Positions 276-54,528 of a stretch of DNA of 64,000 nt are shown here, piece by piece (within the stretch, counting starts at the first letter, position 1; each line of letters opens with the position of its first letter). The notes under the pieces were generated by a model, which was given only the letters and a program-made list of their open reading frames with translations, searched no databases and was not told the DNA's origin. Origin of the DNA: Piromyces finnis finn (taxonomy: Eukaryota > Fungi > Neocallimastigomycota); assembly GCA_002104945.1 (NCBI GenBank), contig MCFH01000010.1, positions 124,001 through 188,000 on the forward strand. The letters run 5' to 3'. The translations under genes were made by a program, and so were the position numbers.

Positions 276-3200
276 ATGAGAATGAGTGGACAAAATAAAC
301 GGGATTATGATGTTATGATGGATAATATAGGGTGGGTAAAAATTTAATATTTAATATATATATATATATTTTCTCTTTCTTTTACAAAGGATAGTACTAA
401 AAAATAAGATTATATTAAAAAAAATTAATGTTAATTATTTTTATACAATTATTATTTTATATGCTATAGTTGTTACAGCCCGATAGATCATAATGATGAT
501 GCTGAAACTAATATTAAGAAAACAAAAAATCCAAAAGATAAGAACATACAAGTATGTAACATATTATACAATAAAAAAGTTTTTTTTTTTTTTAAATTTT
601 AATTTTAAAGTGAAGCATTGTGTTAACAAACCTTTTAAAAAATCTTATAAAGGTATTAAGTCCTCCAAATAGTGAACCAGTTTCTAGTTGTACAATAATA
701 AACTCTGGAAGCAATACTAATAGTAGTAGTAGTAGCAGTAATAGTTCACATAATCATTCGTTAAATGAAAATGAAGATGATAAAATAGTTGTTAATGATA
801 CTGATAATAATAAAGAATTTAATAATAAAATAAAGAAAGATAATGAAAATGAATCAAGTATATTAAATATAGATAACGAAAATAATGTAAAAGAAGCAGA
901 TACCATTGAAAAAGAAAATTCATTTAAAAATGAAGAAACAGAAACAGAAACCTCTAAATCACATAAATCAGATAATAAATTAACAGATATAAAAAAAGAG
1001 GATTCTGATTTACCTCTAGAACATATAAAAATATGTACTCAAATTATAAGGAATATTAAACGACATCACGATTCAGGACCATTTTTAAAACCAGTTGACC
1101 CAGTTGCTCTTGGTATACCAGATTATTTTTCAATTATACACCATCCTATGGATATTTCTACTATCGAAAGTAAATTGAAATCACTAGCTTATCAAACAAT
1201 TGATGAATTTATTGATGATTTTTCTTTAATGTTTAAAAATTGTTATGAATACAATGGAACACAACAACCTGTATCACTAATGGCAAAAAATCTAGAAATT
1301 TCATTTAATAATCATTTAAATCATTATTATCATGAAGTAGGTCTTTTTTTTTAAAGTTCTAAAAAAAATATAATATTTATTGAAAAAGAAATTAAAAAGT
1401 AATTAAAATGGAAAATTAACTTTTTTTTTAAAATTATTAAAATGAAAATGCATTTTATAGATAAATAATTCATCAGAAGAATCTTCACAAAGAGAAATTT
1501 TAAATACAAATATCAAGGTATTTATTTATGAACTTTACTATGATTTTTTTATATTAAATTCACATTTTATATTGTATAAACACATAACATATATTAATTT
1601 TTTTATTCTTATTAACAGGATAATTCATTGAATGATAATACTGATAATACAGCAAAAAAAGCAGAAAAAACAGGAGGAAAAACAACATCAAAAAGAAGAA
1701 CAAATAATAGTAGTTTTTATAGTTATTTATATAAAAAAAGTAGTAGTCGTCTAATGAAATCAACAGGAGAAATGGTTGTTTGTAAAGATGTAATTAATGA
1801 AATATTAAAAAAACGTTATGAACACATAAGCTATCCATTTCTTCATCCAGTAGATCCTGTTGCTTTAAATATTCCAGATTATCCACTTATTATTAAAACA
1901 CCAATGGATATATCGACTATACAAGAAAAATTAGATTCTGGAATTTACTTAAAAAAGAAAGAGTTTGAAGAAGATTTTAGACTCATTTTTAAAAATTGTT
2001 ATCAGTATAATCCTGAAGGAACAGATGTATATATTCTTGGTAAACAGTTAGAAGAAATTTTTAATGAACAATGGAGTATGTTAAAATGAAAATATATATA
2101 TATAATTAAATATAGATTGGGCATGAAATAACTAATAAATACATACTTTTTATATATATATTTTACTATTACTTTTTTTTTGGTATTGTATTAATAAATT
2201 ATGATGGTTAAATTCTTATATCATATAGAATATTATAATGACCGTTATGAAAAATCATTACAAACAGAATATAAAAAAATAAATAAAACTAATAGAACTA
2301 CTCATAAAAAATCATCAACAGTATCCCATACTAATATACCATCTATAGCATCCTCCAAAAGAAATTCTCATACAACTACCTACGCTGCAGAAAACACACC
2401 TATAACAATGACAACATTTAATAATTCATCTAATAAAAATGATAATGTAGATATAGTTAGTAAAAACTATTCAAATCATATCACAAAAAAGAATCATATT
2501 AATGATCATAAATCACAAATGCAACACCCTACGGCTATTCCAAATCACGCTCATGCCACAACTACCCCTAAAACATCAATAAAATCAAAAAAACGTTCTA
2601 TATCAACTACAACAATAGCCACTAAATCTAAAGTATCAAAATCAACAATCATACCAACTCAAACTAAATCAAGTCATAAAATAGTAAGAAAAGATGTTAA
2701 GAAAAAAGGAACTGGAAAGATTATTAAGAAAAGAAAAGTCAGTATTAATGAAGACGAGGAAGAAGAAGAAGAAGAAGAAGAAGAAGAAACTACTATACAA
2801 AACAATTATGATAAATTAAATGACTCAGATAATGATGGTAATTAAATATAATAATGATAAATAGTATCATCATCATCATCATCATCATCATCATTATTAT
2901 AAATATTTTTAATAATTATAAGTTATAATGATTATTAATTATTTAAGACACATTTATATTTGTTTCTCCCAAATATACTCTATTAATATTTTTAATACTA
3001 TTTAATTGATACAAATTTATTTATTTTCTTTTTATTTATTAGAACTATTAAAATTAGAAATTGAAGAATTACAAAAAACTTTACAAACATGTACTGCACG
3101 ACTTTCAATGCTTTTAGAACAAAAAAGTGATTCCTTAAATAAAAAACTACCCACAAAAAAATCTACAATGACGCATTCTACTTCAACGACAACAACATCA

Positions 3201-4386
3201 ACGCATTCTTCTTCCACTTTATCTACTTCAAAAGGTAGAAGAAAAACTTCTTCTGTGAATAGAAAAGCTCCACGAAACCAGAAAAGTCATAAAGAGTCAA
3301 GTGTTAAAGCTACAAAATCAAAAAATGGAGGACTTCATTCTTATGAGGAAGAAGACACCCATCCAAATTATAGTTTAGAAGAAGATATTGATGAAATTGA
3401 AGAAGAAGAAATCGATGAAATTCCAGAAAGTCCAGTATATTATGAATCCTATACCGCAGCAAAAGCTGCAAAAAAGAGAGGTAAAAAAAGAAAGGTAGCG
3501 GCAACTGCCAATGTAAAATCTTCACGGAAAATTCATAAAAGAGGAGCAAAGCGAACCAATATTAATAATACTAAAAATAATTATGAAATTGATACGATAC
3601 CAAAAACAAATGGTAATTATTAGTAAGATTAATAATATATTAAAAAAAACTTACCTATTTTTCTTTAATAGGTCTTGTTTTAAATAAAAAAAGTTCATGA
3701 TCATTTACTATTACTATTATTTCCTTTTTTTTTTTATATTAAATGATTATTCAAATTATATTAATAATATTAACAACAATAATAATTATATAAATTATAT
3801 GAATATTTTCAATTTCGTTATTTTTATAGTATCATTTAATATACCATCATTAAACATGAACCAAAAAAGAGAAATTAGTGATTGTATAAATAAACTTCCT
3901 CCAGAAAAAATGTGTGAAGTCGTTCAAATTATACAAGAATCAATTCCATTAGTAAGTTTTTAATTCTCTTTTATAAAAAATAAATTTTTGAAAGTAAGAA
4001 TATTAAAATTTAATGAATAATAATAATAATAATAATAATAATATGTGTTTTATATGTTAATTATTTTTAAAAGGAAACTGGTCAAGAAGAAATAGAATTA
4101 GATATTGAATCTTTTGATAATACCACATTGTGGAAACTTTATCAATTTGTCAAAGAAGATGAAAAGAAACCAAAAAAAAGGAATATAAGAAAAAGAAGTA
4201 AAGTTTTTTTTAATATTTTATTAATAATTCTATTTTATATTTATTTTTGAAATCAAAATATTAACTAAATAATTTTTATATATTATTTTAACAGTTAAGA
4301 ATGAAGTGATGGATCAAAGTGATTCAAGTAATATCTTATCCGATTCTGATTCTGATGATTCTTCAAATAGTAGTGAAGAATCATAA
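276..4386 (+). CDS. BDF1: BET-family double-bromodomain + ET-domain protein (Bdf1-like), 10 exons: 276-331, 479-551, 653-1336, 1461-1517, 1619-2075, 2229-2837, 3043-3612, 3830-3951, 4074-4197, 4295-4386
   Basis: Two bromodomains (PFLKPVDPVALGIPDYFSIIHHPMDISTIESKL...NCYEYN; PFLHPVDPVALNIPDYPLIIKTPMDISTIQEKL...NCYQYN), a coiled coil, and an ET domain (MNQKREISDCINKLPPEKMCEVVQII...EEIELDIESFDNTTLWKLYQFV). GT-AG introns join all ORF-track pieces in frame and end in an acidic S/D tail with TAA at 4384-4386. The 5' exons are less certain. Confidence 0.92.
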
Positions 4387-4394
4387 AAAACATA

Positions 4395-4425
<31 letters not shown>

Positions 4426-5309
4426 GATCAATTCAAACTAATACCTAAAATAATACAAAAATAGTATAATACAACCACAATAATGACAAATCATACGAAT
4501 GTACAGAAATCACTTCAAATCTAATATTATAATTATACAACAATACATTATATTATATTGAATATAATGTAAAACTTTATATAATTAAAACTTTTTCAAT
4601 AATATATTTTTTTGTAATTTTCATTTATTGCCTTTTATTATTATTTATTCTTTATATATTTTTTATATTTCTATTTTTATACATATGAATAATTAACTAT
4701 ATTTCTTTTTTTTTTTTTTTTATAAGATATTAATTCATGTACATATACTTATAATATTATTAATAATTATTTAATTTTTTTTTTCCTCTAAACAAAGTAT
4801 CTTAACATTTCATAAAAATCGATATATGTATTTAACGAAATTTATTTATATAAAAATTTTATTTAGTCTTTTTACTTTTTTTTAATGAAAGTAATAATAT
4901 TTGAAACCATTTTTATTATCATATTTAATACTTTTTTTTTTTTTTATTTTTATTATTTTTATAACTTTTAACACAGTTTTTCTAATAAATATACATTGCC
5001 TAAATTATATAATAAAGTTAAATTCCATTAAAGATATTATTTCTTATATAACAATTAAGAAAAAAGTTTTTTTTCTTTTATGACATAGACATTATATAAT
5101 TTTATTATTATTTATTTACTTTAAACTTATTTCATAAATGATATACAAATATATAGAAATTATTCAAAATTAATGCTAAATGATTACGAAATGTAGTAAA
5201 AATACTTAACCAATTTATTAGCGTGTAATCCTAGAAATAATAAAATAATAGGATTATAAAAATGTCGAAGCTAATGATACAATTTGCTAGATATTTTTAT
5301 ACGCATTTT

Positions 5310-5600
5310 ATATTTTCCCTTTTTCCTTTTTTCTTCTATTGAACCTCCAAGTTGACTTGAAATTATAGTTTCATTTCAGAAATGAGCTTTTTAAAAATTT
5401 CTTTGCTATTTATTCCAAGAATTTCATTGGATATTTGTATAAGCTTATCACTATCCTTTATTTTTTTGAAATAATATTATTTTTTCTTTGCTTTTACAGC
5501 AGATACAACTTCAAGAAATGACAAATATAATTAGCATTTAAACATTTTTATTACCTAGAATTATTCATTTTCTGGTATTTCTGTAAGTTCTTTAATTTTA
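5310..5600 (-). pseudogene. Degraded coding fragment of unknown origin
   Basis: A locally GC-richer patch reads on the minus strand as KIKDSDKLIQISNEILGINSKEIFKKLISEMKL* with further stops. No start codon or family was recognised. Confidence 0.25.
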
Positions 5601-5860
5601 TAAAGATTATATAAAATATTAAAATATCTAATCTAAAATAATAAAATAATCCCTAAATATAAAAGTTCACTAATCTATATATTCTATATATTAAATAAAG
5701 TAAGTATAGTCTTTAAAATTTTTAATTTTTAAATAGTGACAATTTCTGTTATTAAATTAAAAATTTTGAATATTTCTTTATTTTATATATTTAATCATAA
5801 ATGTATGATTGAATATATAATTATAATTAGTTCATTATAATTATGAATTAGTTTTTTCAT

Positions 5861-5898
<38 letters not shown>

Positions 5899-7684
5899 AG
5901 CAATATTTTTATTTCTTTTGAATAACAATAAAGTCAAAAAAAAAGTTAAGATTTATTTTTTTTTCTTTTTTTTTTAACAAATAAAATTTTATTAATAATA
6001 AAATTTTTGGGTTAGATTATATATAAAGAACTTTTTTTATATTTTGTTATTTGAAAAGTATTAAATATCTTTTTTTTTTTTCTTTCTTTTTTATAAATTT
6101 AAAATAATAAATATTTGAATAGGAAATACTCTATAAATATTGAAATAACATTAACCAAAAAAAAAAAAAAAAAACTTTTTTCCTATTTCTCAATATTATT
6201 AATCTTATTTCTTTTTTATGTTAAGTATTATTAATTAAACTTTATTTAGTATTATTTTGAAAGTTAATGAAAAACATAATACAAAACAAATAGATCAAAA
6301 TACAACATTCTTTATAATTTAAAATTATTTATTTTACTTTTTCATTAGGTTTATTTTATATTCAATCAATTATAATTATCAAAATAAGAAATATATATAT
6401 ATTAAATATATATAATATTTAATCCTAGCCATCATACTATTATTAAATAATAATAAAACAATAAAAGAAATAGTATTTTTATTAAAACTATACAAAGTAT
6501 CTTTTTTTAATATAAATATAATATTCAATTTTAATAATAAAAAGTTAATAAATCCTGCATCATTGTTGCCAATAAATAATTTTAATAAAAAAAGATACTT
6601 GATTTATTATTTTTGTGTATTACAAAAATGATAGGTTTAAGCATACAAATTTTGTGTTACTAGGATTAATTAGATAAGAAATCCAATACTTATTCATAAT
6701 TGAATTAAAAACTTTATTGGATAGTTAATTACTACAAAATAAAAATTTTTATAGCTTAATTATTATTATTATTAGTTTTTTTTCCCATTGAGTATCATCG
6801 AATTAGGCTGACTTTTTTTTTTTTTTGTCGTGGTAGTATTGTATTATTAATTATATTGTTACTTTTAATATATATGTAATTTTGAAATGAATGACATCTA
6901 ATGAATTTTATCATATCACATACTATTTCTTTTTATATCTCATTACCTATAGTAAGAATGACTACAAATATAAAATAGTATTGTATAATATTAAATATGG
7001 ATATTAAAAAAAGGACATTATTATTAGTTATGATAATAAAGGTTTTTATTATTTTATGCATAATTCATACTCTATTGAAAATAAAAGAAGAATAATTATA
7101 TGATTTTATTATTTTTGATCTATTAATACTAAAATAATTAGCATTATTCATTTTAACTTATTAAAGTAAAATAATAAACCATCCCTTAATTTAATATACC
7201 TTTTAATATATAATAATATGACAAATAATTTTAATTATTGATTGATTTCACACCATTTTAATCATTTTATATTTATGTCATTATTGAAAGATAATTTTAT
7301 ATACAGGAAAAAGAATAAGGCAGTACACCGTTTCTTTTTTAAATCAATTTATTTTAAACTCGTATTATTTGATATTAACATAACCTCTTTATTAATTATA
7401 TATAAAATCATTTCCTAATGAATAAGTAATAATGAACTGATACCATGAAATACATTATGGTGCATCTACTTTCTGCAAAAAAAAGTATGCATTTACATAA
7501 AAAAAAAGTATGCATTTACAAAAAAAAAGGATAATTTAAAGTTTTTTTTTAAATGGATCATATATTTATTAATAATATATTACAACATAATATAAGTCCA
7601 TATATTATTTAATTATTACATTTATATTTTTAATATAATATTTTGTCAACATTTTAAATTAAAAACAATCCAATTTATAAGTTA

Positions 7685-40358: not shown

Positions 40359-43199
40359 TTTGGACAATGCCAAAACTATCATTAGTAGCTCTATGAAGCT
40401 ACTTTTTGATAGGTTTAGTAAGACACCTAACGTAATCAAGAGCGCCGACGTTGTTGTTCTGTCAATGAAGAATAACAAGGCTCCAGGTCCCGATGGTATC
40501 CCAATTGAATTTTTCAAAGCTTTCTTTTGTAACGAAGAACTGGAGAAAGAACATAAGTCTGCTGGAAATTGTCTTAAATTAATTTTTAATAAAATCTGGA
40601 ATGGTTCCTTTCCTTTGAATTGGAACTCTGCTTCCATTGTTTCTATTCCAAAGAAAGGCGATCTTTCAGACTGTAATAATTATCGTGGTATTTCTCTCAT
40701 CAATGTAGGTCTTAAAATTATTTCAAAAATTATAACTAATAGAATTTCAAAGTATGCTCTTTCTCATAATTTTATAAGACCTGAGCAATTTGGTTTTCGC
40801 AATAAAGAAGAATGTATTAGCTTATTTGTTTCCATTAGAGAAATCTGTCAAAGAAGAAAATTTAAAGGAAAAGCCACTTATGTCGCCTTTCTAGACCTTA
40901 AAAAAGCATACGACTCAGTTCCTATTTTTAATATCCTTACAAAGTTATATAAATTAGGTATACGTGGTAAATGTTTTGATTTTCTCAATAATCTCTACTC
41001 TACCTCTAAAGCTCGTGCACGTTTCTTGGATATGCTTTCCAATGAATTCCCTATAAACCGTGGTGTAAGACAAGGATGTCCTCTTTCTCCTATACTGTTT
41101 AACCTCTTTATCAATGATATTTTAAATAAATGTGAAAGGCTTGGAGTTAGCTTAGGTAATAAACGCTGTTGTGGTGGCCTTTTCGCTGATGACATTGTTT
41201 TGATTGCTCCTAGTAAGAAGAACCTTCAAAAGATGCTCAATCTAGTCCTTGATTGGGCTAATTTAAATGAAATGTCTTTTGGAATAAATAAATGTGCAAC
41301 TATTGTTGTTAAACCTATCAACTTTAATAGATCCCCTAGTTATGTCGACCCAACATTTTACATCGGTATGTACTCGATTCCAAAGGTTTCTTGCTATACT
41401 TATCTTGGAATCCCATTCGACGAAGATCTTTCTTTGACTCCTATTCTGTCCAATATGTACAAAAAAGTTCAGAAATCTTTATTCTCTTTTAAGAACTTCC
41501 TCACCAACAATTGTGTTCCTATTGGCTTAAAAAACATAGTAATTCATTCTTATATTTTAAGCAAAGTCTCTTATTATGCTCCTTTGCTTGGTTCCAACAA
41601 AAATAGAACTAGAAGAGTCCAATCTCTTATCAATACTGCTGTTTTATGGAGTGTCAATAGCTTTCACAATAAAAGTTTTAATAACAAAGATTTTGTTTTT
41701 GAACGAAATTCATTTATTAGTCTGTATGCTCTTACAAGAGATATGAAGATCCCTACCCTTTCAGGTATTTGTGCTGCGCAACAAGTGAAATGCTTTGTTA
41801 AATGGAGAAAATCAAATTGTATAATTAAAGATCTCGTCCGATCTATTCCTCCCATGTCTCATTACTCTTGGGCCAAAGAATCTTGTTCACTACATAAGAA
41901 GCTTATGAAAATAAATATTAAAAGTACTAAAGATATTAGAGAATATTATTGGAATAATAGTAGCCTAAATAATGGAAGTAAAGCCCTCAGATATACTAAC
42001 AACAAATTCCTTAATTCAAATCGCCTAATGCATATCGGTCTCAACAAACCTCACTTAAATTTAGGAATTACCTGGATTATTCGTATTCGATGCGGTTATG
42101 AAAATACTACCCGAATTGCTATTGCCAGTAATAGAGTTACTCCTGACTGCCCTCGTGTCTGTCCATGTTGCGGATATGACGAACAATCTTTTTACCATTG
42201 GATATTAGAATGTTCTGCATTCTCTGAATACAGAGCTTCTTCACTTAGCTTTCTTGACGATCTTTTTACCCTTTTTTACAATAAATATAAGAATCAATTC
42301 ATCACATACTTACTCCCCGAAACGGAAGTAAGAAAAACAATTTATAACTATATTTTTACGTTCCTTCTTGGTGGAACTTTAGCTTATGATGAGCTACAAA
42401 TCGATAAGGCGGAACAAAGACATTTGAATGAACAGCTTTACAGTTCATCGGGGTCTCATGTTCCATATGTAGAGGGTCTCGCGGCTTTTCTTACTAAAAC
42501 AATCCCTATCATTAGTAGCTCTATGAAGCTACTTTTTGATAGGTTTAGTAAGACACCTAACGTAATCAAGAGCGCCGACGTCGTACCGATATGGCAAAGG
42601 AACATTTCCAATGTTCCGTACACAGGGTTCAATGTTAGTATTTCCTCAAATTCGAATGAAAACATTATGAACTCATGGGAGAGTTTAGTGGACACCACAC
42701 TATCATACCTGATGTTACTTCTTTTTTTTATTTCATTTAATTTATTAGGTAGGGACCAATCCCACACAGTACAAATTGCAGAGTTCATTGAACTTTTATG
42801 CAACTTAAATAATTATTTTATATTTTTTTATATTTATATTTTTATTTATATATATTTTATTATTTTTATTTATTACTTATTATATCAATATCAATATGTA
42901 TTATCACCTAATATTATGTAATATCACTAATTAAATAAGTAAATAAATAAAAGACGTGTATTCTCTTCCTAGTCTAAAAAAAAAAAAAAAAAAAAAAATG
43001 GGAAGGTTTTATAAGATGTTTAAAAATTACACTTCCTCAATCTTTAAATGTCATCCTTCAACTTCCTTTACCTCAATTAAAAGAAGTTTTAACAAAGGTT
43101 CCAGATTTGAAGGATACACTTAAGAATCAAATTAAACAATTATCTAAAAGTCAACGTACCAGTAAAATTGAAAAAATCATGGAATTACTTAAAATGTAA
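40359..43199 (+). pseudogene. Orphan last exon of a symplekin/Pta1-family gene, split by a LINE (pieces 40359-40378 and 42999-43199)
   Basis: Removing 40379-42998 restores (V/I)[47 protein letters not shown]...*. This matches the symplekin C-terminal domain as recalled (human [34 protein letters not shown]). There is an AG acceptor at 40357-40358, and no upstream symplekin exons were found in the window. Confidence 0.82.
40379..42998 (+). mobile_element. 5'-truncated non-LTR retrotransposon (LINE family A): intact RT + CCHC knuckle, poly(A) tail, no endonuclease
   Basis: RT motifs KAPGPDG, YRGISL, EQFGFR, FLDLKKAYDSV, GVRQGCPLSPILFN, LFADD and YLG. Knuckle CPCCGYDEQSFYHWILEC. A23 at 42976-42998. 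The frame is open to 42921. Confidence 0.96.
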
Positions 43200-43400
43200 A
43201 AAAAAGAATTCATATTATATAAAAAAAATTATTTATTTATTTTTATATCATATATAACTAATATAGAAAAGTAAATAAATAAGAATTTTTTTAATTTTAT
43301 ATTTTTACTTTTTTCAATATATTTTTTTATTTATTAATGGATTTTATATATAAACTTTTTAAATTTTTCAATTTTTTTTTTTTAATTAAACTATACAATA

Positions 43401-43432
<32 letters not shown>

Positions 43433-43770
43433 TATATTTCATTATATTATTATAATTATAATTATATTTTAAACGAATACATAGTAATTTTTTCTCCACC
43501 ATACTTTTTTCTTTTATATATTTATATCAACAAAATCATTTCAAAAAAAAAAAAAAGTAAAATATTAAATAATATCTAATAATAATAATAATTTAAAATA
43601 ATTTCATATTAAATATATATATTTAATAAAAATAAAAAGACATTTTTCAAGAAATAAAAATAAATTTAATAAAATAATAAAATATAAAATCATATATTTA
43701 ATACTTCAACAACACTTATTAATTTCTTAAATCATAACTAAAAATTAATAACTAATTATTTATTTATTTA

Positions 43771-43775
<5 letters not shown>

Positions 43776-43862
<87 letters not shown>
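43776..43862. repeat. (AAT)17-(ATT)12 inverted microsatellite (perfect palindrome with 36-bp arms)
   Basis: The AAT tract switches directly to an ATT tract at aatatt (43824-43829). A smaller example lies at about 23615-23650. Confidence 0.9.
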
Positions 43863-44747
43863 TGAAATTATTTTTAAAATTTATCATATTATTATTACAA
43901 TTGTTTTTTTATTTGAATTATATAGTAAATCCTTGCTATTTTCTTTTTTACAAAATAAAGAGTAATACAAACAATTATAATCAGAAAAATTTTATAATTC
44001 TCATATCATTATTTCCCTTTTTTTTTTTAAAAAAAAAAAATAAAAATGAAGCAACATACAAAAAAAAATAATACTAATCGATAATTTACTTTATCTCCTT
44101 AATGAAATTTTCATTAAAAATATAATTATTATGTGTAATGTTTATTTATAATTAATAATTTTTTTATTTCAGGAAATTATTAAATACTTTTTTAATATTT
44201 TTGAAAGATTATAATAACCATTATTTTCATTTTTTCATAATTTTTTAACATTTTCTAATATTATGATTTCTACTATTATTTAAATATTTAAATTCTATTT
44301 TATAAAATATGAGAAGAAAAAAATGAAATAAAAAAGTTATTACAAATACATTAATTTTCATTTATCTTTTTTTTAACCAATAAAAATTATCTAAATTTGT
44401 ATATAAAATATATTATGTATTTTCCTTTTCTGTATGTTCTATTTCTAATAATAATGTATACAATTAATTAATAATTGAATTTATAAGTTTAAGAATATGT
44501 AAGAAAAAAAAAAAAGGCTCATCTTAAATTATGGCGTTCAAAAAAAATATATATTATTTTATAATATTTATAATAATAATAATAATAATAGTACTATTTA
44601 ATAATAGTGATATATTTATTCTATTCTATTCATATATAAATTATCTTTTTTTTTCTAAACAGGAATGAATGAATAAAACTAAGGATTGAATTATTTATAA
44701 TTCTATTTTATTATTGTAAAAGGTAAAATTCTTTTCTTTATTCAACT

Positions 44748-44798
<51 letters not shown>

Positions 44799-45617
44799 TT
44801 AATAGAGTTATTTAATTAAATAAAAAAAAATGGTAATAATGTATTACCTTCTATTAAATAAATTGAACCATATATTAATTTAATATATTACCATTTTTTT
44901 AAAAAAATAATTTTTGTTAATACCAAGGATGAAAAAAAAAAATTAATTAAACTTAATATATATATTAAAAAGTTGTAATGAAAAATAGGTAGAGTTTTTA
45001 TTTTTTATAAAAAGTTTATAACTTTAAAAGATCTATTTATTAAATCATTCTATAATTATTAATGTTTTATTTCTTATAAAGTTATTATTCTAATCTATAT
45101 TAATTGGATATTAATTGGCTGTAAATTTTGCTAAAATAATGTTGTCCTAACTTTTTATATTTAAAATATAATTTTTTTTTTGATTTGGATATTTATTCTT
45201 TAATTATAATAACACAAAAATAAAAAAATGAAAAATGAAAGATTTTTTTTTTTTTTTTTGATTAAATATATCTTTTATTTATATTTTTCTAAATAATGGT
45301 TTAAAATTCTTATTAAAAATAAAAAAAATGATTAATAAAATAACTTTATAAAATAAATATTATTATTATAGATAAAATTAAGTAATATTAAATGACATTA
45401 AAATAAATAATTGATATTAAAACCTTCAATATGTATATAATTCTATATTGCTAATAATTTATTAAAATAATTAAAAGAAAGAGATTATATATACTTTTAT
45501 TAATAGATAAAAAATAATTAAAATATACTACTAATATGATCATATTTTTCTTTATATAATAAAAATCTGATATATTGTAGAATATGATTAACACTATTAA
45601 TTCGCAAGATATACTCT

Positions 45618-48600
45618 TTATTCTTCCTTAGTTTCATTTTCCTTGGTTGGTTTGTATTTTTTAAAAATTTGTATTTTTCTATTTTGGTATTTCATTTTTT
45701 TTTTAAAAGCTAAAAATTCAGTCACCTCAGATACATTAGCGATAGCTTTTTCAGAATCAGGGATAGTAATAATATCTGGAATGGTCATGTTACTTATATC
45801 TCTTTTCAATGCTCTTTCTTTAATACTATCATTGGTTCTAACAAATGGTAAATAATAAGATAAAGTATAGATAATGGTGGCAATTCTACAAAAGTTAGTG
45901 GAAAGGATTTGATAAAATATTGGAAATACAACGCAAACTTCAAAAGGTAATTTAATTTTTGGGTTATTTCTTGCGATGATTAAATTAAAGATATCTAAGC
46001 TAATGAGTGAAATGGCAATGCAAATGCAAACAATCATTAGTGCTGGTAAATAAGAATGCATTAAAAACATAAATACTAATAGCACAAGAAAGGCGTAATC
46101 GTTTAAGATGGAAATAATAAAATCAAAACAAAATAATTTAGCTGTAAGAGTAGCTCGATGATTCCAACGACATTTATGGAGCAAACAATAAAGGAATTTA
46201 AAAAGAAAACGATGACGTGCTGGTTCCCAATAAGCAACACGTTGACGTGACAATGAATATTGACCACAATCGCAATCTTTCATATTTTCTCCTAGAAAAT
46301 GTGGAAGATATTCTTTTAAGTGGAAATAGCATCTTGGTACAAGAGTATCTATGATAACATGTGCTATTTCAATTTTATAATTACCATCATGTAATTCATT
46401 TGGATCACAAAATTGAGGTTTACCATACATGGTATGAAGACGAAGACCAAGTTGTAAATCATCTCCACGGAAAACTGTATCATGACGATAAAGACACTCC
46501 AATAGGAATGGGGTACTCCAAGTACTCATAGCCCCACTTGGGAATACTACTGTACCAATATCCTTATGTACCTTTTTACTGTACATTGAAATAATATATT
46601 CAAGATTTTGAAATGCTGAAACTATACCTTCACGACGATTACTTGCAATAATAGGATAGGCTAATGCTTTTACATTTTGATCCTTTTTAAAGTAGGATAA
46701 AATTTCTTCTTCAACCCAATTTTCCGGAATTAATACATCATCATCGATAATTGAAATGTACTTGATATCAATACCCGACCAAAACAAATTATTTATTAGA
46801 CAAAATTGAGCTAAAGTTTTAGAACCTTCATTTAAATTTGCATAAATAATATTTAATCCACAATAATTAGGATGTGTACATCTAAAGTGATGACTATAAC
46901 GGTCTACAATTTCCTTCATTTTTTGTTTTTCACTTGGAGAGGAACCATTTTCAGCTATGAAAATTGACATTGGCGTAGTAATTTTCAATAAATTTTCCAA
47001 AGTTGCTGGCAACACATCTGAACTATTATGACATACAATAAGAAAAGCATGATTAATACTTTTATACATGGATACAATTTTAGATTGTTTATTTTTATTT
47101 CCATGAACAATGTCAATTTCTATGACATTTCCTATTTCTTCATTTGGTATTCCGTCGTTACCCAAATTAATGTTGATGAATGAATTATTTGTGTCTGTGC
47201 TATTATGTTTGTTATAGTTAATACCCTTATCCCCATTCGAATCCCTATCATGAGTGGAATAGTTATTGGCACTATCTGAATTATTATTGAAAATGATTGT
47301 ATTATTGGATGCACTACTATTGTCATAAGTATCACTATATAGGGTAAAACCATCGTCTTCTTCATCATTAATAATGGTTGATGAACTATCCATTTCATTA
47401 TAAATAGCTAATGATTTCTTATTAAGAGAAGGCCATTTTACAAAAGGTGCGCCTAATAAAATCATAAAACTTTCTCTATTAAGTAAAAGCCAACATATAA
47501 TATTAAAGGTTATAAAGGGTATGCTGAAAGTTGCATAATTATTAATGATATAATTATATATTTTTCGACAGAGAACTTTGTAATAACTAAACTTTAGATT
47601 GGATCCAATTAAAAAATAGGATATTATAATCATGATCACAAGTTCAAATAAAGCAACCAACCAAAGCTTGAAAAAAGTAAAAGGAAAAAGTCTTGTTTTT
47701 TTATTGGAAAAAAAGTACCAAACAAAAGGATTAATGAAAACACCGTATAAAAGATGAATAAAGATGATTATGAATGATATTAAGAAAGCATTTGTAAAAA
47801 TAGAGTAGATACTGAATAAATTAATATTACGATTAGATTTAATAATTTCATCTCGCCTTTTTTTAATAAATATTTTCAAAGAGGCATAATCCTTTTCTAT
47901 ATTTGACATTTTATTTATTTGATTATTATTCTTATCAAGGATAGGTTCCAGTGAACCGTCCCATTTTAAATCTGCATGAACCATATTGAAAATACTATCC
48001 ATTCTATCTAAAAATAAGGTAGTTCCAAAAAAATTATTTACTATATAATTTATATAATCTCTAGTGTTATGTTTTTCACTTGAATAATTCATTAAATTAT
48101 CAAATATTGGTCTTCTCGTATCTTGTTTTCCTTTTCCTATAAAACGAAATTCCTCAAATTCTGTATAGATATAATTTTTACTCCAATCATTTAATGGTGA
48201 AGAAAAATATCCTTCATGATAATTCCATTGGTTTTTTGTCTATCGAGTTAAGAAAAAAAAATTTTAAATATTAATTGGTATGTTATCTTTTTTTTTTTTT
48301 TTAAATAATAACCATTTTATATCTATCTATCTATATATACTATATATAATATTTCATAAAAGATATAACTACTTACTTTATCATAATATAAAAAATAATT
48401 GGTTCCATTATATAAATAGCCATGCTGATTATTTAAAATGTAATCTATAGTCATTATTTTTAAAAATGAATCATAATTAAAGTTTTTTTTTAATTGGTCC
48501 AAGGAATTAAAATTTTCAGTCATATAGAATAATTTAGCAAGATCATTTTTGGAATGAAAAGTTTCAGGAGATTCAATTCCTTGATACCAATAATTTGCAT

Positions 48601-49896
48601 AACTATCTATATTTTCATTAATTAACAGTTTTGGGAATGTTTCAATTAAATCAAATTCACCATTGTATTTCATTGGAGAAAAGTGACTATTCATTTGGCC
48701 ATACATTTCAGTAGTGTTAAATTCATTTTTAAAATAATCAATATTTGGATTTTCTTTGATTAAATAAAAACCTATAGGGTTATTATTAAAATAAACTCTG
48801 GTAAATCCCACTTGAGCAGATGGTACATCCATAACATTACAGATATCGGTATTATGACGAAGCATAAGATTATCAGAAGAAGTAGATACTAATTGAATAC
48901 TAGTCTTATTAAACAGATTATAATATAATTTATCTGTGGGAGATGTTTGTGGTTGGGTTAAACTGTACTCTTTATAGGAGAGAAAATAAGAAGTTTTTTT
49001 AGGGTTATGATTCTTTTGAAAATAATATTTATTGGAATAGTAGGTAGTAAAATAAATATCGGTATTTATATTATCTGCCAATGCATTTATTTCCAATAAT
49101 AAATTTTCAAACTTTCCCACCGCATATGGAGTAATAATAGTAGCACTTACTTTTAATGATGGACTATTTTGTGAATTGGTGTAATGAGCATTTTCTAAAT
49201 CCTTATAGCCGGAAATGTCACCATTTAAATAAATTGTTGATATAAAATTATCAGAAAACAATTCTGAATACTTGTTTTGATTTCTGGTTATTTGGTTTCC
49301 TACTACCGTAGAAAGATCTGGATGATTATAAATTGAATCATTTCTATTGAAAAATTCATTTAACGGTTGGTTAGAATTCATATTCGATGGTTGAGCCAAT
49401 CTTTTAAAATTTTCTTCTTTTATGATTTTATTTTTATCAGTGATACTATAAGAAACATAACTATATGTTTCCTTTTTATCTAATTCATATTCTCCTCTCC
49501 AAATAGGATAATCTGTATCATCTAAATCTACTATTTTATTATTAATTTTCAGACCTACTTTTGTTGTATTTCTATTCACCGGGAACACTACACTAAATTG
49601 ATGAACCTCTAATTTTTTATATAACAAATATAACATTTATATAATATATATGTTATAATGTTATAAGTCAATAGGTAAAAATATATTATAAATGTATATT
49701 ATTATTATGATATTATGATATGATTATTAATAACAAAATTTAACAGCTAAAAAAATTATAATTATAATATAAATAAAAATTAAAATATATATATATATAT
49801 ATTCTTTAAATACTAACTTGAATAAACATTTGTGAAAAGAATTATTAATTCAAATAAATAAGTAACCCTATATATAAAATTCTTCTTTTTCAACAT
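45618..49896 (-). CDS. Signal peptide + CotH-like kinase domain + multi-TM processive GT2 glycosyltransferase fusion, about 1310 aa; exons 49896-49818, 49608-48377, 48239-45618
   Basis: Exon 1 is MLKKKNFIYRVTYLFELIILFTNVYS with donor gttagt (phase 1). Exon 2 is CotH-like (DVPSAQVGFTRVYFNNNPIGFYLIKEN; NYDSFLKIMTIDYILNNQHGYLYNGTNYFLYYDK) with donor gtaagt (phase 0). The acceptor at 48241-48240 gives TKNQWNY..., open and in frame with the 824-aa ORF (147 nt to ATG 48092). GT2 motifs: IIDDDV, FPSGAMSTW, RGDDLQLG and RQRVAYW, with flanking TM helices. Confidence 0.85.
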
Positions 49897-50649
49897 TTTT
49901 ATTTTACTAATAATAATGTATATAAAGACTATTAAGTAAGTATATCAAGTATATTATTATTTAGTGTTAATACTATAAAGTATTGCTATTTTTAAATAAA
50001 TAAAAAAAACAAAAACACTTGATAAACCTTTTTATTTTTCTTTATTTTTTATATAGGATTTCCAACCAATAAACCTTGAGAAATAAATAAATATATATTT
50101 ATTTTATTTAAATCATCCATTGAATAATTATTCCATATTTAAATGGGTATTTAAATATATAAAAAATATTAAAATTAAAAATAAATTAAATTTATGAATT
50201 TTTTTTTTTAATACCAAAAAAATTTTTTTTAATAGTAATACTAATGATATTATTTAATATTAAGCAAAAATAAAAGGTAATATTATTTTAATAAGAAATA
50301 TCATATTTTACTATTTTATATTCATCCTTTTAATATTACAATTTTATTTTACTTTTTTTTAAAAAAAGCCTTTTTTTTCCTTATTGAATAATCTTCTTTT
50401 TTTTGATAGCAAACTTTTGGGTTGGTTACCTGACCAATCAAACAAAAAAAAATTTTTAATATTCCTTCTTTTGTATTTTTATAACTCTTGGCATATTTTT
50501 TTTTCTTTTTGGATGCTTTTATTTCATTTATAAATATATTTTTATATTGACGCTCTTTAACATCGTTTTATACTTTTAATATTTTTTATTAGTAAAGCAA
50601 TTCAATTTCATATTTAAATATTTTTTTTTAAAAAAAATCTTATTTAAAG
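49897..50649. promoter_or_regulatory. Putative bidirectional promoter (753 bp) between the CotH-GT2 and LRR-GH genes
   Basis: Divergent ATGs at 49896 (minus) and 50650 (plus). CCAAT words occur at 50066-50070 and 50434-50438, the second inside a short inverted repeat. Function is inferred from geometry only. Confidence 0.45.
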
Positions 50650-51811
50650 ATGAATATAAAATTTTTAATAGCGGTTTTTCTTTTTCTATTCCTGTTGCCT
50701 TTTTCTGTGGATAGTTTAAATTCCTGTCGAAAACTGAAAAATCACTTGTGTCCTTCATGCGGTAAAGAAGACTATCAATGTGAAACCAATGAAAAGGGTG
50801 AGATAGATAGATTATATGTAATATGAAACAATACAATGCTTTAAACTATTTTTATCAAGTTTTATAGCTATATTATTAATATAATATAATTTGATAATTT
50901 GTATATATTCATAAAAATTAATGTATAATAAATATATATTATAGACATATTAATAATCAAGATTTTAGTGGTGGTATTCCAGATAAGATTTTCGAAATAA
51001 CTTCTATAACATCATTGTAAATAATACTTTTTTTTTCTATTTGAAAAACTTATTAAAATAACCTGTACTAACTTTTTATTATTTATAAAAATCAAATGTG
51101 TCTATGTCTTTAAAAATAATAAATTTATATATATATATATTTATAGATATTTACTAAATGACAAAATTTTTACACTTTCGAATCAAATTAGTAATCTAAA
51201 AAATCTTTTAAGACTGTAAAATTTATACCTTTTAATATAAAATATATCACTTAAAACACTTTTTTTTTTATGAAAAAATTTAATTTAATAATAATACTAA
51301 AAATTATAATATTTTAAATTCACCTTAACTATTTTATTTTATATGATTAATACAGAGATGTTAGAAAAAATAATTTGAAAACTATTCCTTCAACTATTAG
51401 AGATCTTAGTAAACTTAAATACTTGTAATTTTTTAAAAATTTTAAAAAGAATTCATATAAATAAGCTTTTATATTTTTTTTAAATAAAAAAGGCCAAAAA
51501 AATTAATTTATATATTTTTACTAACTTCTTATTTCCATTTATCTATAGAAAACTAAGTAATAATCCTATAACAGAACTTCCAGAAGAAATTGGAAATTTA
51601 AAGGAACTTAGATCATTGTAAATAAAAAATATAAAAGGATTAAAAAGAAAACTTTTTTTTGATATTAATTTAAATTCCTCCCTTTTTTTTTAATTGATTT
51701 TTTATTTCTATACTAAGATATTTAACAAATTGTAAATTGAAAAAACTGCCATCGTCCATTACTCAACTTTCTAATCTACAAGATTTGTGAGTACTTCTAA
51801 AAATTAAAAGA

Positions 51812-51862
<51 letters not shown>

Positions 51863-54528
51863 AATAATTGTATTTTTTATATAAATTTTTATTTTAATTT
51901 AATAATAGAAAACTTGAAAATAATGAATTATCAGCTATTTCAGAAGAAATTAAAAATATTAGAAATAAAAAACAATTGTAAGAGTTATTAAAATATATTT
52001 AAATATGGTTATAAAAGTTAAAATAATAAATAATTCTTTATTTAACTTTTTTTTTCATAAAGAGTTTTAGATAACAAATCGATTGTTGAATCCTCAATTA
52101 CACATAATGAAACTGATTTTATGTAAGTTAATTTAAAATAAAATTATTAAAATGGTTTTAATTAAAAAAAAATATTGATATCACTATGAAAGTTAACTAA
52201 TATAGAATGAATCAATTTATTTATTAATAATATTAAAAAAATTTTAACAGGTCCTATAAAATAACTAGTTTGGTTAGAAAAAAAAATTTATCATTTTATA
52301 AGGATGAAGGCGTCTCTTATATTGCCAAAACTAATGGTAGATATCTTTCAGTATATGACGGCTCTACTTTCAAAGATATTTATATTCAAGGTGTAAATAT
52401 TGGATTAGGTTTACCAAATTATTTTCCCGAAGAAACTGGAATTGCTTATGATCAATATTATGATTGGTTTAATAAAATTGCGGAAATGAATGCTAATTCC
52501 ATTAGAGTTTATACCATACAATCACCTGAGTTCTATAAAGCCTTTTATAATTATAATAAAAACAATAAGCATAAACCAATCTATTTATTTCAGGGTACAT
52601 GGTATAATGAAGATCGTTGGTTAGAAACTCAAAATGCATTTGATTTAGAGCTACTTTCTAATCTTTATCAAGACACAAGAGACTTAATAGATATAATCCA
52701 TGGAAATTCAATTTTACCGAAATTGCCAGGAAGAGCATCAGGTATATATTCATTTGATATATCTCCTTGGTGTATTGGTTGGATTTTAGGTGTTGAATCG
52801 AGTAAACAATTTGTAAATACGACAAATATTTGTAATCCAGATAAAACTCATTATAAAGGGGAATACATTTCAGCCAATAATATACAGCCTTTTGAAGTTT
52901 TCTGGGCCATGACTGCTGATTATACAGTTTCCTACGAAATGACGAATTATAAAACTCAAAGACCTATTAGTTTCTCCAATTGGCTTACAGCCGATGTCAT
53001 GCGACATCCTAGTGAAACAATGGAAGATGAAGATACCGTTACACTAGATATTCAACGACTTACCCAAGAAGATGCCTTTAAATGTGGATTTTTCGCTTCT
53101 TATCATGTTTATCCGTATTATCCAAATTTTATGTGGACACAAAAAAATTATATTGAACATAAAAATGATGATGGCAAAATAGACCCGTACGAAGCGTATT
53201 TACAAGATTTGAAATCAGTTCATTTCGATAACATTCCCCTTCTTGTAGCAGAATTTGGAATACCATCTTCTCGTGGAATAACCCATCAAAATCCTATTAC
53301 CGGTTATAATCAAGGAAAAGTTGATGAAAAAACACAAGGACATATGCTTGTTGAAATGGCAAAAAGTATTAAAGCTAATAATTACACTGGTTGTTTAATT
53401 TTTTCATGGCAAGATGAATGGTTTAAGCGTACTTGGAATACTATGGATAATACAAATGAAACCAGAAGAGCGTATTGGGATGATGTTCAAACAAATGAAC
53501 AAAACTTTGGTATACTTGATTTTGTTTCCTATACCGATGACCATAAGATTATGATACTCGATGGCAAAACAGATGACTGGACCTCCAATGATAAATTTAC
53601 TGAAACAAGGAATATCAAGATGTCAGTTAAAAAGGATGCCGCCTATATTTATATTTTACTTGAAGCAAATACTATGGTTGATTTAACAAAGGATAGAGTA
53701 TTGATATCTTTTGATGTTACTCCGAAGTCCGGTTCTCACATCTATACCTCCCATGATGGTAAAGATATTTTTAATTTTTCCGAAGCTGTTGATTTTGTGC
53801 TTGAATTAAACGGACGAAATGATACAGAAATATTTACCCATGAATATTATGACAAGTTTGTCTATTCCTATTATCAGTATGAAGAAGTGAAAATCAAAGG
53901 ATTAAAGCCTGCCACTTCACGTAAAAGTTCAGTGTTTAATTCGATTAAACTTTTAAATGAAATAGAACTTCTTCTTCCTGATAGAAATGAAACGATCAAT
54001 ACACTCTATGATATTACTGGTAAGCTTTTATTTGGAAGTACGGATAAAGCATCTCCAGATTATTCAACAATATCGGATTTCTATTTAACCCCATCTATTG
54101 CTGAAATAAGAATTGCGTATGGTTTACTTAATTTTAGAGATCCATCATCTTTAGCAATTGAAGATGATTTCTATGCTCTTGATAAGAATGTTGATTTAGA
54201 AATAGATTCAATTAAAATAGGACTTACTGAAGGCAATAACACCATATTCAAAACCTTCTCATGGGATAAATGGGATACTGTTGCTTATCAAGAAAGGTTA
54301 AAAGATTCCTATTCTATTTTACAAGGTTATTTTGCAGAAGAAGAAAATTCCAATCATTCCTATAAGAAAATTATAATACTATCTATACTAATGATTATTA
54401 TACTATTGTTACTATTCTTACTATTTTTTTTTTCAAAAGAAAAAATATTATTAAAAAAAATATACAACCTTAAAGCAAAGCAAGACAAAAAAACAAAAAA
54501 ACAAAAAAATAGTCCAAATTTATTATGA
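50650..54528 (+). CDS. Signal peptide + Cys cap + LRR array + clan GH-A (TIM-barrel) glycoside hydrolase + C-terminal TM anchor; exons 50650-about 50800, about 50945/50962-51016, 51147-51215, 51356-51424, 51549-51617, 51718-51786, 51909-51977, 52063-52122, 52251-54528
   Basis: Exon 1 is MNIKFLIAVFLFLFLLPFSVDSLNSCRKLKNHLCPSCGKEDYQCETNEKG. Five 69-nt phase-2 LRR exons follow (e.g. KLSNNPITELPEEIGNLKELRSL) and splice in frame into the 752-aa ORF. GH motifs: IQGVNIG, MNANSIRVYT, WILGVE (acid/base), ASYHVYPYYP, LLVAEFG (nucleophile) and FSWQDEWFKRTWN. TM: IIILSILMIIILLLLFLLFFF. The exon 1/2 junction is ambiguous. Confidence 0.85.

Follow-up and report, generated by a model that had tools for sequence, protein, structure and literature searches.

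Does a single gene of the gut fungus Piromyces finnis join a CotH-like domain to a membrane-embedded glycosyltransferase of family 2 (GT2) and, if it does, what might the resulting protein do? The question is raised by a locus on contig MCFH01000010.1, where we analysed a stretch of 64,000 nucleotides (nt; positions 124,001 to 188,000, or C2:124001-188000 in our numbering, referred to below as the window) of an extremely AT-rich genome of 56.46 Mb in 232 contigs. A preliminary description, made from the letters alone, had proposed that two open reading frames (ORFs) on the reverse strand, one of 437 amino acids (aa; 48323..49636) and one of 824 aa (45618..48092), are joined by an intron at 48376-48240 and by 49 stop-free codons, and that a signal-peptide exon lies upstream, beyond a further intron at 49817-49609. 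Reading the letters again bears out each of these elements. Exon 2 ends on a whole codon (...TAT GAT AAA, at 48377) ahead of GTAAGT; 49 in-frame sense codons (TKNQWNYHEGY...FDNL) then lead from 48239 to the ATG of the 824-aa ORF at 48092, and a split codon, AAG (K27), at the junction of exons 1 and 2 puts exon 2 back in frame. The three-exon product is identical, letter for letter, to the public 1310-aa model ORX54680.1 (UniProt A0A1Y1VGU2; P0001 in our set), which also agrees on the signal-peptide exon and its intron. The joined protein is this database record, and the exons were searched individually; exon 3 proved 100 % identical to the record "hypothetical protein BCR36DRAFT_347596 [Piromyces finnis]".

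The CotH-GT2 fusion is real: the locus holds one three-exon gene for a 1310-aa multi-pass membrane protein (Table 1). The most direct evidence is internal to the gene. CotH homology crosses intron 2, so that the domain is complete only with exon 3, and exon 3 reads stop-free from the final third of that domain across the bundle of transmembrane (TM) helices and the linker to the GT2 domain. A single exon therefore holds the fusion, which does not depend on splicing. The same layout recurs elsewhere. An ortholog that is ~60 % identical (P0002) is present as contigs of 4.3-4.4 kb in three JGI samples, each with one 4305-nt ORF that includes both CotH and GT2, and one of these contigs has a 22-nt poly(A) tail behind a short 3' untranslated region, which identifies it as a full-length mRNA, albeit of a related gut fungus and not of P. 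finnis itself. The hydrophobic leader of P0002 directly adjoins K-L-F-Q-F-N-V-V, in agreement with the proposed junction of exons 1 and 2, and in both P0002 and a further ortholog, P0013, hydrophobic N-termini are joined straight to a shared ectodomain start, K-x-x-Q-F-x-V-V. Another ortholog, P0010, is a single intron-less ORF of 4551 nt on an 8-kb metagenomic contig with AT-rich flanks. The peptide spanning the intron 2 junction is continuous in the orthologs, including the mRNA contig and the intron-less genomic gene.

Within P. finnis there are three CotH-GT2 genes: the window gene, a near-identical copy at C2:11000-19500 (public model ORX54641.1, 1359 aa) and, on contig C1, a paralog with 52-59 % identity. 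Intron 2 has the same position in all three; in the C1 paralog it falls at the identical codon (...FLYYEN, then gtaaat...tttaag, then NNNKWNFHEGYY...), and the frame is continuous only once the intron is removed. Neocallimastix lanati and Anaeromyces robustus have full-length public models too, of 1446 and 1436 aa respectively, and every one of these models is named "hypothetical protein". As a separate observation, three sequencing runs that we guessed to be RNA gave word shares of 0.80, 0.75 and 0.53; these values are compatible with exon-only coverage (exons make up ~0.84 of the locus) and prove nothing.

Table 1. The CotH-GT2 gene and its predicted product. Positions are those of the window; aa numbers refer to the 1310-aa protein.
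Feature	Position	Strand	Remarks
Exon 1	49818..49896	-	ATG at 49896, 26 codons plus 1 base; signal-peptide-like MLKKKNFIYRVTYLFELIILFTNVYS and first base of K27
Intron 1	49609..49817	-	209 nt, GTTAGT...TTAG, phase 1; same as in public model
Exon 2	48377..49608	-	beta-rich N-terminal part (aa 27-~225) and N-terminal two thirds of CotH-like domain
H422 codon	48422-48424	-	in exon 2; column of catalytic Asp (B. subtilis D228)
Intron 2	48240..48376	-	137 nt, GTAAGT...GATAG, phase 0; interrupts CotH domain
Exon 3, part 1	47826..48239	-	C-terminal third of CotH-like domain; hhalign columns to ectodomain residue 553
WN(Y/F)HEGY invariant block	48207-48227	-	within exon 3; Y448 and S450 in D-x-D columns of canonical CotH
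Three N-terminal TM helices	47451..47825	-	aa ~581-614, 623-648, 677-700; hydropathy and AlphaFold2 helices, pLDDT 76-98
Disordered N/S/D-rich linker, predicted cytosolic	47103..47354	-	aa 733-816; pLDDT <50 at model residues 164-247
GT2 (GT-A) catalytic domain	46179..47096	-	aa ~819-1124; PF13641 6e-12
GT2 motifs	46737-46745 (DDD); 46458-46466 (GDD); 46227-46244 (QRVAYW)	-	AENGS 866-870; DDD 936-938; GDD 1029-1031; QRVAYW 1103-1108
C-terminal membrane helices	45843..46157	-	aa 1132-1164, 1167-1192, 1203-1236; two clearly hydrophobic, third may be interface helix
K/R-rich C-terminal tail and stop codon	45618..45842	-	aa 1237-1310

Having established that the two parts belong to one protein, we asked what kind of enzyme the GT2 core might be. 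Alongside its match to PF13641, exon 3 scores 23.2 bits (7e-5) against PF00535, just below the cut-off of 23.3 bits; Pfam gave no match to the Chitin_synth, Cellulose_synt or hyaluronan synthase (HAS) families, and NCBIfam gave none at all. The DDD, GDD and variant RQRVAYW (1102-1108) motifs picked out in the preliminary description are all present and conserved, and D936, D938, D1031, Q1103, R1104 and W1108 are among 13 residues that are invariant in an alignment of 64 family members (the others being N868, K911, E984, Y985, G1006, H1023 and T1069). An AlphaFold2 (AF2) model of the core (aa 570-1265), built from this alignment, has a GT-A fold with a predicted local distance difference test score (pLDDT) of 84.4 and a predicted template modelling score of 0.83, and is disordered only in the linker. 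When this model was compared with solved structures, Foldseek placed Chlorella virus HAS (CvHAS) first at 1.5e-10, followed by Xenopus HAS1 (XlHAS1, to 1e-8), chitin synthases (Chs1) and BcsA; the top 34 matches are all membrane-integrated processive GT2 synthases, and ArnC also appears. VIA, a structural aligner independent of Foldseek, gave Z scores of 21.7 for PcManGT (327 residues), 21.4 for CvHAS (378 residues, model 109-663), 20.1 for XlHAS1, 19.1 for soybean CesA1, 19.0 for BcsA, 18.0 for CslF6 and 15.9 for Chs1, with soluble GT-A enzymes at 15.8 or below and aligned to the catalytic domain only.

The synthase alignments begin at model residue ~106-109, in the last N-terminal TM helix, and end at ~665-670, past the C-terminal helices. 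That last N-terminal helix superposes on the helix preceding the GT domain in HAS, BcsA and CesA, and the C-terminal helices align with the C-terminal TM helices of the same three enzymes. A shape search of the Atlas returned uncharacterised Ascomycota PF13641 clusters first, and then bacterial PgaC-like and chitin-synthase-like clusters. Judged by its modelled fold and its motifs, the core resembles a HAS- or BcsA-type enzyme while lying outside every named synthase family. The earlier label of a processive synthase fits both fold and motifs, and it is from these that we infer processivity itself. Two further conserved motifs, both within window ~46137-46274, are specific to the family: C-x-C-G (aa 1093-1096) just ahead of Q-R-x-x-x-W, and H-R-A-T-x-T-A-K (aa 1131-1138) where the first C-terminal TM helix begins; the latter may recall the gating loop of BcsA (F-x-V-T-x-K). 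Matches to TMEM9, TAF6 and DHHC20 in domain and profile searches of PDB sequences were rejected as noise.

The ectodomain is harder to recognise. The Pfam CotH family, PF08757, matched only when the last 208 aa of exon 2 were scanned alone (window 48377-49000; 7.4e-7, 29.4 bits against a cut-off of 23.8, profile positions 13-199 of 322), and neither the whole 410-aa exon 2 nor the whole ectodomain gave a match to it. For comparison, canonical CotH accounts for at least 124 PF08757 matches in the same genome, of up to 158 bits, with most full-length ones at ~100-158 bits, and the family matches five of seven ortholog ectodomains, the best at 1e-16. Aligned by hhalign with four canonical P. finnis CotH proteins, however, the ectodomain yields a probability of 99.2 % and an E value of 7e-20 over 301 columns, which makes homology secure: by this alignment it is a true but divergent CotH homolog. 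Ahead of the CotH-like part, the first ~65 residues of the ectodomain (aa 27-95, window ~49400-49606) are modelled by AF2 as a beta-sandwich with a pLDDT of 80-85. No Pfam family matches aa 27-225, an Atlas feature search with aa 27-240 gave CBM_20/CBM_48-like leads at noise level (0.79), and PDB searches with the ectodomain alone and with a 7-sequence profile gave noise only.

Is the CotH-like domain likely to be catalytically active? Canonical P. finnis CotH aligns to B. cereus CotH (5JD9, E 7e-11) through NF-D...(23 residues)...PW-D-Y-D, an Asp spacing that is the same as that of D228 and D251 in B. subtilis; the catalytic Asp corresponding to D228 is D224 in the 5JD9 chain. Bacillus CotH variants D228Q and D251A are both catalytically inactive (PMC7821199). 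In hhalign and hmmalign alignments, the D228 column holds H422 in the P. finnis protein and His, Tyr or Asn in orthologs, the D251 column holds an invariant Tyr (Y448) that sits in the invariant block W-N-(Y/F)-H-E-G-Y, and the next Asp column holds S450 in the P. finnis protein and Ser, Thr, Asn or Ile across the orthogroup. The register of the Y448 and S450 columns, which assumes an ungapped stretch from W to F, is supported by a bridge sequence from gut metagenomes, the 1397-aa CotH-GT2 protein P0053 (CotH 95 bits): it keeps H-N-W-D-N-Y and G-E-Y-D-Y-T-F-G with the W-to-F spacing of canonical CotH, and has retained the first catalytic Asp, with a Glu at the second. Because neither of the Asp residues that Bacillus CotH needs for activity is kept, the CotH module of the Piromyces/Neocallimastix/Anaeromyces orthogroup is probably a pseudokinase. 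Of the CotH module proposed in the preliminary description, then, the homology stands, and the module is probably not a kinase.

How would such a protein sit in the membrane? By hydropathy and AF2, the three N-terminal TM helices listed in Table 1 are the only hydrophobic ones ahead of the GT2 domain, the helix at aa 656-672 being polar. Three is an odd number, so that the GT2 domain should lie on the opposite side of the membrane from the ectodomain; the GT2 domain and linker are predicted to be cytosolic and the ectodomain to be outside. The equivalent helix in solved synthases runs out-to-in, in agreement with a cytosolic GT2. Prediction thus recovers every element of the topology proposed earlier (extracellular CotH, TM bundle, N-rich linker, cytosolic GT2, further TM helices), with three predicted crossings placing the GT2 core in the cytosol rather than outside the cell, the arrangement that had been named as speaking against the proposal.

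These elements suggest the following scenario. The signal peptide would lead the ~550-aa ectodomain, made up of the beta-rich part and the divergent CotH fold, out of the cell; the three TM helices would return the chain to the cytosol, where the disordered N-rich linker and the GT-A/GT2 domain would follow, and then two or three further helices. The core would take up a cytosolic nucleotide sugar, with D1031 as the putative catalytic base and D936 and D938 handling metal and diphosphate, and sugars would be added to a beta-linked chain that is extruded via the enzyme's own TM channel. The CotH module would sit at the outer mouth of this channel. Since both kinase Asp residues have been lost and the ectodomain is nevertheless conserved across genera, its most likely role would be that of a non-catalytic module that binds or scaffolds the growing polymer, a partner protein or some constituent of the wall. 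In short, we consider it likely that the gene encodes a beta-glycosyltransferase that works processively, or at least builds oligomers, sends its product out via its own channel and is topped by a non-catalytic CotH-fold cap binding polymer, wall or partner. This reading draws directly on gene structure, domain homologies, the lost Asp residues, the core fold, conservation and copy number, and reaches beyond them in what it says of the polymer, of processivity, of how the tail is placed and of what the ectodomain does.

Several observations weigh against it. The AF2 model of the ectodomain, built from a 7-sequence alignment, has a mean pLDDT of 46.5, too poor for a fold search, so that both the fold of the CotH domain and the condition of its active site are read from alignments only. 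The invariant pair H445-E446, just before Y448, could in principle substitute for the lost metal ligand. Three C-terminal helices would put the K/R-rich tail outside, contrary to the positive-inside rule; two would leave it cytosolic. Q1103-R1104-x-x-x-W1108 is invariant family-wide but differs from Q-x-x-R-W in its spacing and in the position of the Arg. Profiles of the core built from a single sequence, from 12 and from 64 sequences found no solved synthase when searched against the PDB. Finally, the best structural match, PcManGT, is a small membrane GT2 that uses GDP-Man and is not a proven polymer synthase.

This match to PcManGT (Z 21.7), together with the presence of ArnC in the Foldseek list, an altered QxxRW and the lack of a Pfam chitin, cellulose or HAS family match, lends some weight to a different interpretation, namely that the GT2 core is no polymer synthase at all and instead makes a short oligosaccharide or a lipid-linked sugar in the manner of PcManGT, DPMS, ArnC or glucosylceramide synthase, in which case the ectodomain would have nothing to do with a secreted polymer. 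We regard this as unlikely. The matches to HAS, CesA, BcsA and CslF6 are longer (364-379 residues) and include TM helices on both sides of the GT domain, six membrane helices flank that domain, and G(E/D)D and Q-R...W are invariant. Moreover, large ectodomains recur in several eukaryotic lineages, which would be sensible for an exported product.

A further possibility accepts the synthase and disputes the cap: the ectodomain might still be an enzyme, a kinase or other phosphotransferase rewired around H445/E446 or using another site, that modifies wall proteins or the emerging glycan. Sugar-phosphorylating kinase-fold enzymes do exist in the secretory pathway (FAM20B, POMK) and provide a precedent. 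Activity would also offer an explanation for the invariance of WN(Y/F)HEGY and for the conservation of an NN..YL.N..NYFL block that includes a kinase-loop-like Asn; and the sister-type ectodomain of P0053 retains HNWDNY and GEYD, so that the fusion probably started with an active kinase. That the orthogroup is active today nonetheless strikes us as improbable: the catalytic-Asp column holds His, Tyr or Asn and varies even among orthologs, the D251 column holds Tyr and the next Asp column Ser, Thr, Asn or Ile, when a change of either single Asp is enough to kill Bacillus CotH (PMC7821199).

We would be similarly cautious about a bolder proposal that assigns different roles to the two lineages. 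A bacterial-derived Fam20-like fold would have been mounted at the exit of two different synthase paralogs. Where the site is intact, as in P0053, it would phosphorylate the growing glycan or recipient wall proteins while synthesis is under way; in Piromyces, Neocallimastix and Anaeromyces it would have turned into a pseudokinase that serves as a receptor for the polymer. This is a long shot. If true, it would represent a new coupling of synthase and modifier and give the large gut-fungal CotH expansion its first defined cellular role. The weakest alternative, that a secreted CotH gene and a neighbouring membrane GT2 gene were wrongly joined by annotation or assembly, can point to truncated public models of some orthologs (P0005, 763 aa; P0006, 1105 aa) and is close to refuted, given a CotH domain that is completed only by exon 3 and continues without a stop into the TM helices and GT2, an architecture repeated at three P. 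finnis loci, in Neocallimastix, in Anaeromyces and in metagenomes, and its presence on both a poly(A) mRNA contig and an uninterrupted genomic ORF.

Where, then, did the two halves of this probable synthase with its CotH-fold cap come from? An exhaustive profile search with the GT2 core found 449 relatives. The nearest outside the gut fungi are in Powellomyces hirtus, Caulochytrium protostelioides, Gaertneriomyces, Chromosphaera perkinsii, Capsaspora owczarzaki and Barthelona, all of them eukaryotic "hypothetical proteins", and the family shares a layout of three hydrophobic helices, GT2 and two or three more helices. By sequence relationship, the core belongs to an unnamed eukaryotic GT2 family that includes chytrids, filastereans, ichthyosporeans and Barthelona. 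Within this family the gut-fungal core is sister to a chytrid clade, with a support of 99 (SH-aLRT) in a 117-row tree and of 96/93 in a 36-row tree, a placement that fits vertical fungal descent. Gut-fungal CotH is regarded as a bacterial acquisition (PMC11291939). Taken with the core trees, this bacterial origin would mean that the gene is a chimera, in which a synthase core of old eukaryotic descent has been joined to an ectodomain gained by horizontal transfer. Among the 150 GT2 family representatives that ranked best, CotH is found on gut-fungal-type proteins only, which supports the preliminary description in calling the architecture unusual. The idea of a hidden CotH in the ectodomains of Capsaspora and Chromosphaera was rejected (hhalign probability <1 %), and the N-terminal regions of 17 other family members contain no Pfam domain.

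P0053 complicates this picture in that its GT2 falls in a different GT2 subfamily. A single origin of the CotH-bearing GT2 cores was rejected by the approximately unbiased (AU) test (ΔlnL 80.7, p 1.6e-5), and none of 200 bootstrap trees unites them; the group tested was named after the first tree had been seen, and P0053 sits on a long branch. The ectodomain of P0053, on the other hand, groups with those of the orthogroup against eight canonical CotH domains (95/95), a thin sample of the more than 120 available, and scores 209 bits with the fusion profile versus 49 bits with the canonical profile. The simplest reading of these trees and profiles is that a single type of ectodomain became attached to two distinct synthase paralogs. 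No P0053-type gene was found in the P. finnis genome.

The genomic surroundings of the gene also deserve a comment. Window 43074-51464 forms a collinear segmental duplication of at least 8.4 kb with C2:11000-19500, ~156 kb away, at 95-99.5 % nucleotide identity. It spans introns, intergenic DNA and the first ~860 bp of a divergent neighbour gene, and the shared upstream region, of ~750 bp, was duplicated along with the synthase gene. The extent given is a lower bound, limited by the locus compared, and the comparison left out 49601-49669. Either the duplication took place very recently or the second copy is a duplicate due to assembly or haplotypes. Within the linker, the two near-identical copies are set apart by an indel of ~129 bp (window ~47083-47092 versus 4010-4140 in the copy; 1310 versus 1359 aa), which indicates that the linker tolerates changes in length; its length is also variable among orthologs.

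A canonical CotH gene is the head-to-head neighbour of the C1 paralog (C1:2617675-2618628, - strand) and likewise of the P0053 gene (3430-4788 of the P0053 locus, - strand), an arrangement that may be a trace of ectodomain recruitment. The window gene is instead head-to-head with the divergent neighbour (window 50650-54528, + strand), whose ORF at 52270-54528 (752 aa) has no Pfam glycoside-hydrolase match and hence offers no clue to the polymer; its C-terminal membrane anchor gives a TMEM9-like match that stays below threshold. For the C1 paralog, the public model ORX61272.1 (763 aa; locus C1:2618500-2625575, 1930-6055) is truncated: a CotH-like exon, 52 % identical to aa 7-436, lies in frame directly upstream, past the intron at the conserved position. 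The C1 locus extends to the end of its contig.

What was already known of this gene amounts to public gene models for an unnamed "hypothetical protein", and a full-text literature search found no description of the CotH-GT2 architecture. What is new is, first, an ortholog on poly(A) mRNA, a conserved intron position and a sister lineage, P0053, whose CotH site appears from its sequence to be catalytically intact; and second, the assignment of the core to an unnamed family of eukaryotes, beside the chytrids, together with the occurrence of the ectodomain on members of two GT2 subfamilies. In a survey of four anaerobic gut fungi (PMC6054980), CotH ranks among the top five Pfam domains by abundance; of functions for it there, we found none demonstrated and one proposed, binding of the plant cell wall (PMC11291939). 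A CotH ectodomain hard-wired to an enzyme resembling HAS and cellulose synthase provides a physical tie between the CotH family and surface-glycan synthesis, and with it a tractable entry point. The analysis also reveals an uncharacterised family of eukaryotic synthase-like GT2 proteins, members of which have repeatedly gained large ectodomains. P0053 and the orthogroup, compared with one another, may amount to a natural experiment in the conversion of a secreted kinase fold into a pseudokinase.

Among the known systems that come close are the class I hyaluronan synthases of Chlorella virus and Xenopus (HAS1; PDB 8snc, 8smm). Like the core, they are membrane-integrated GT2 enzymes with TM helices before and after the GT-A domain, and they share with it the DxD motif, the acidic base motif G-D-D and, on an interface helix, a Q...W motif, VIA aligning 364-378 residues. 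Identity, however, is 12-14 %, the 64-sequence profile gives no sequence-level match, and the core has Q-R-x-x-x-W where HAS has Q-x-x-R-W. The gut-fungal protein also has one extra N-terminal TM helix, which puts its N-terminus outside, and a ~550-aa ectodomain that is absent from HAS. BcsA has the same synthase fold (Z 18.9-19.0) together with a PilZ module for cyclic di-GMP that the gut-fungal protein lacks. BcsB is the periplasmic partner of BcsA, and the two are fused as AcsAB in some bacteria. The concept of a non-catalytic extracytoplasmic module at the channel exit, which we propose for CotH, would by analogy be common to both systems, but BcsB is unrelated to CotH, comes after the synthase rather than before it and has its own TM anchor.

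Fungal chitin synthases, such as class V/VII enzymes with a myosin motor, are processive GT2 enzymes whose accessory domains are cytosolic. Those with accessory domains are comparable in being fungal GT2 synthases with an additional N-terminal domain and a related fold (Z 15.6-15.9), but the core has no Chitin_synth match in Pfam and its fold match to them is weaker than that to HAS, CesA or BcsA. Members of the unnamed family (Powellomyces KAI8916592.1, Caulochytrium RKP02019.1, Capsaspora CAOG_06260 and CAOG_05310, Chromosphaera and Barthelona; E 1e-116 to 1e-40) have the same layout and the same invariant residues as the core, and differ in their N-terminal regions, which are without a Pfam match and unrelated to CotH. 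Canonical CotH, finally, as found in Bacillus (5JD9) and in more than 120 secreted, often dockerin-bearing gut-fungal proteins, is homologous to the ectodomain and, like it, extracytoplasmic; compared with these secreted proteins, the ectodomain has both of its catalytic Asp positions changed, scores 29 rather than 100-158 bits, and is tethered to a multi-pass membrane enzyme.

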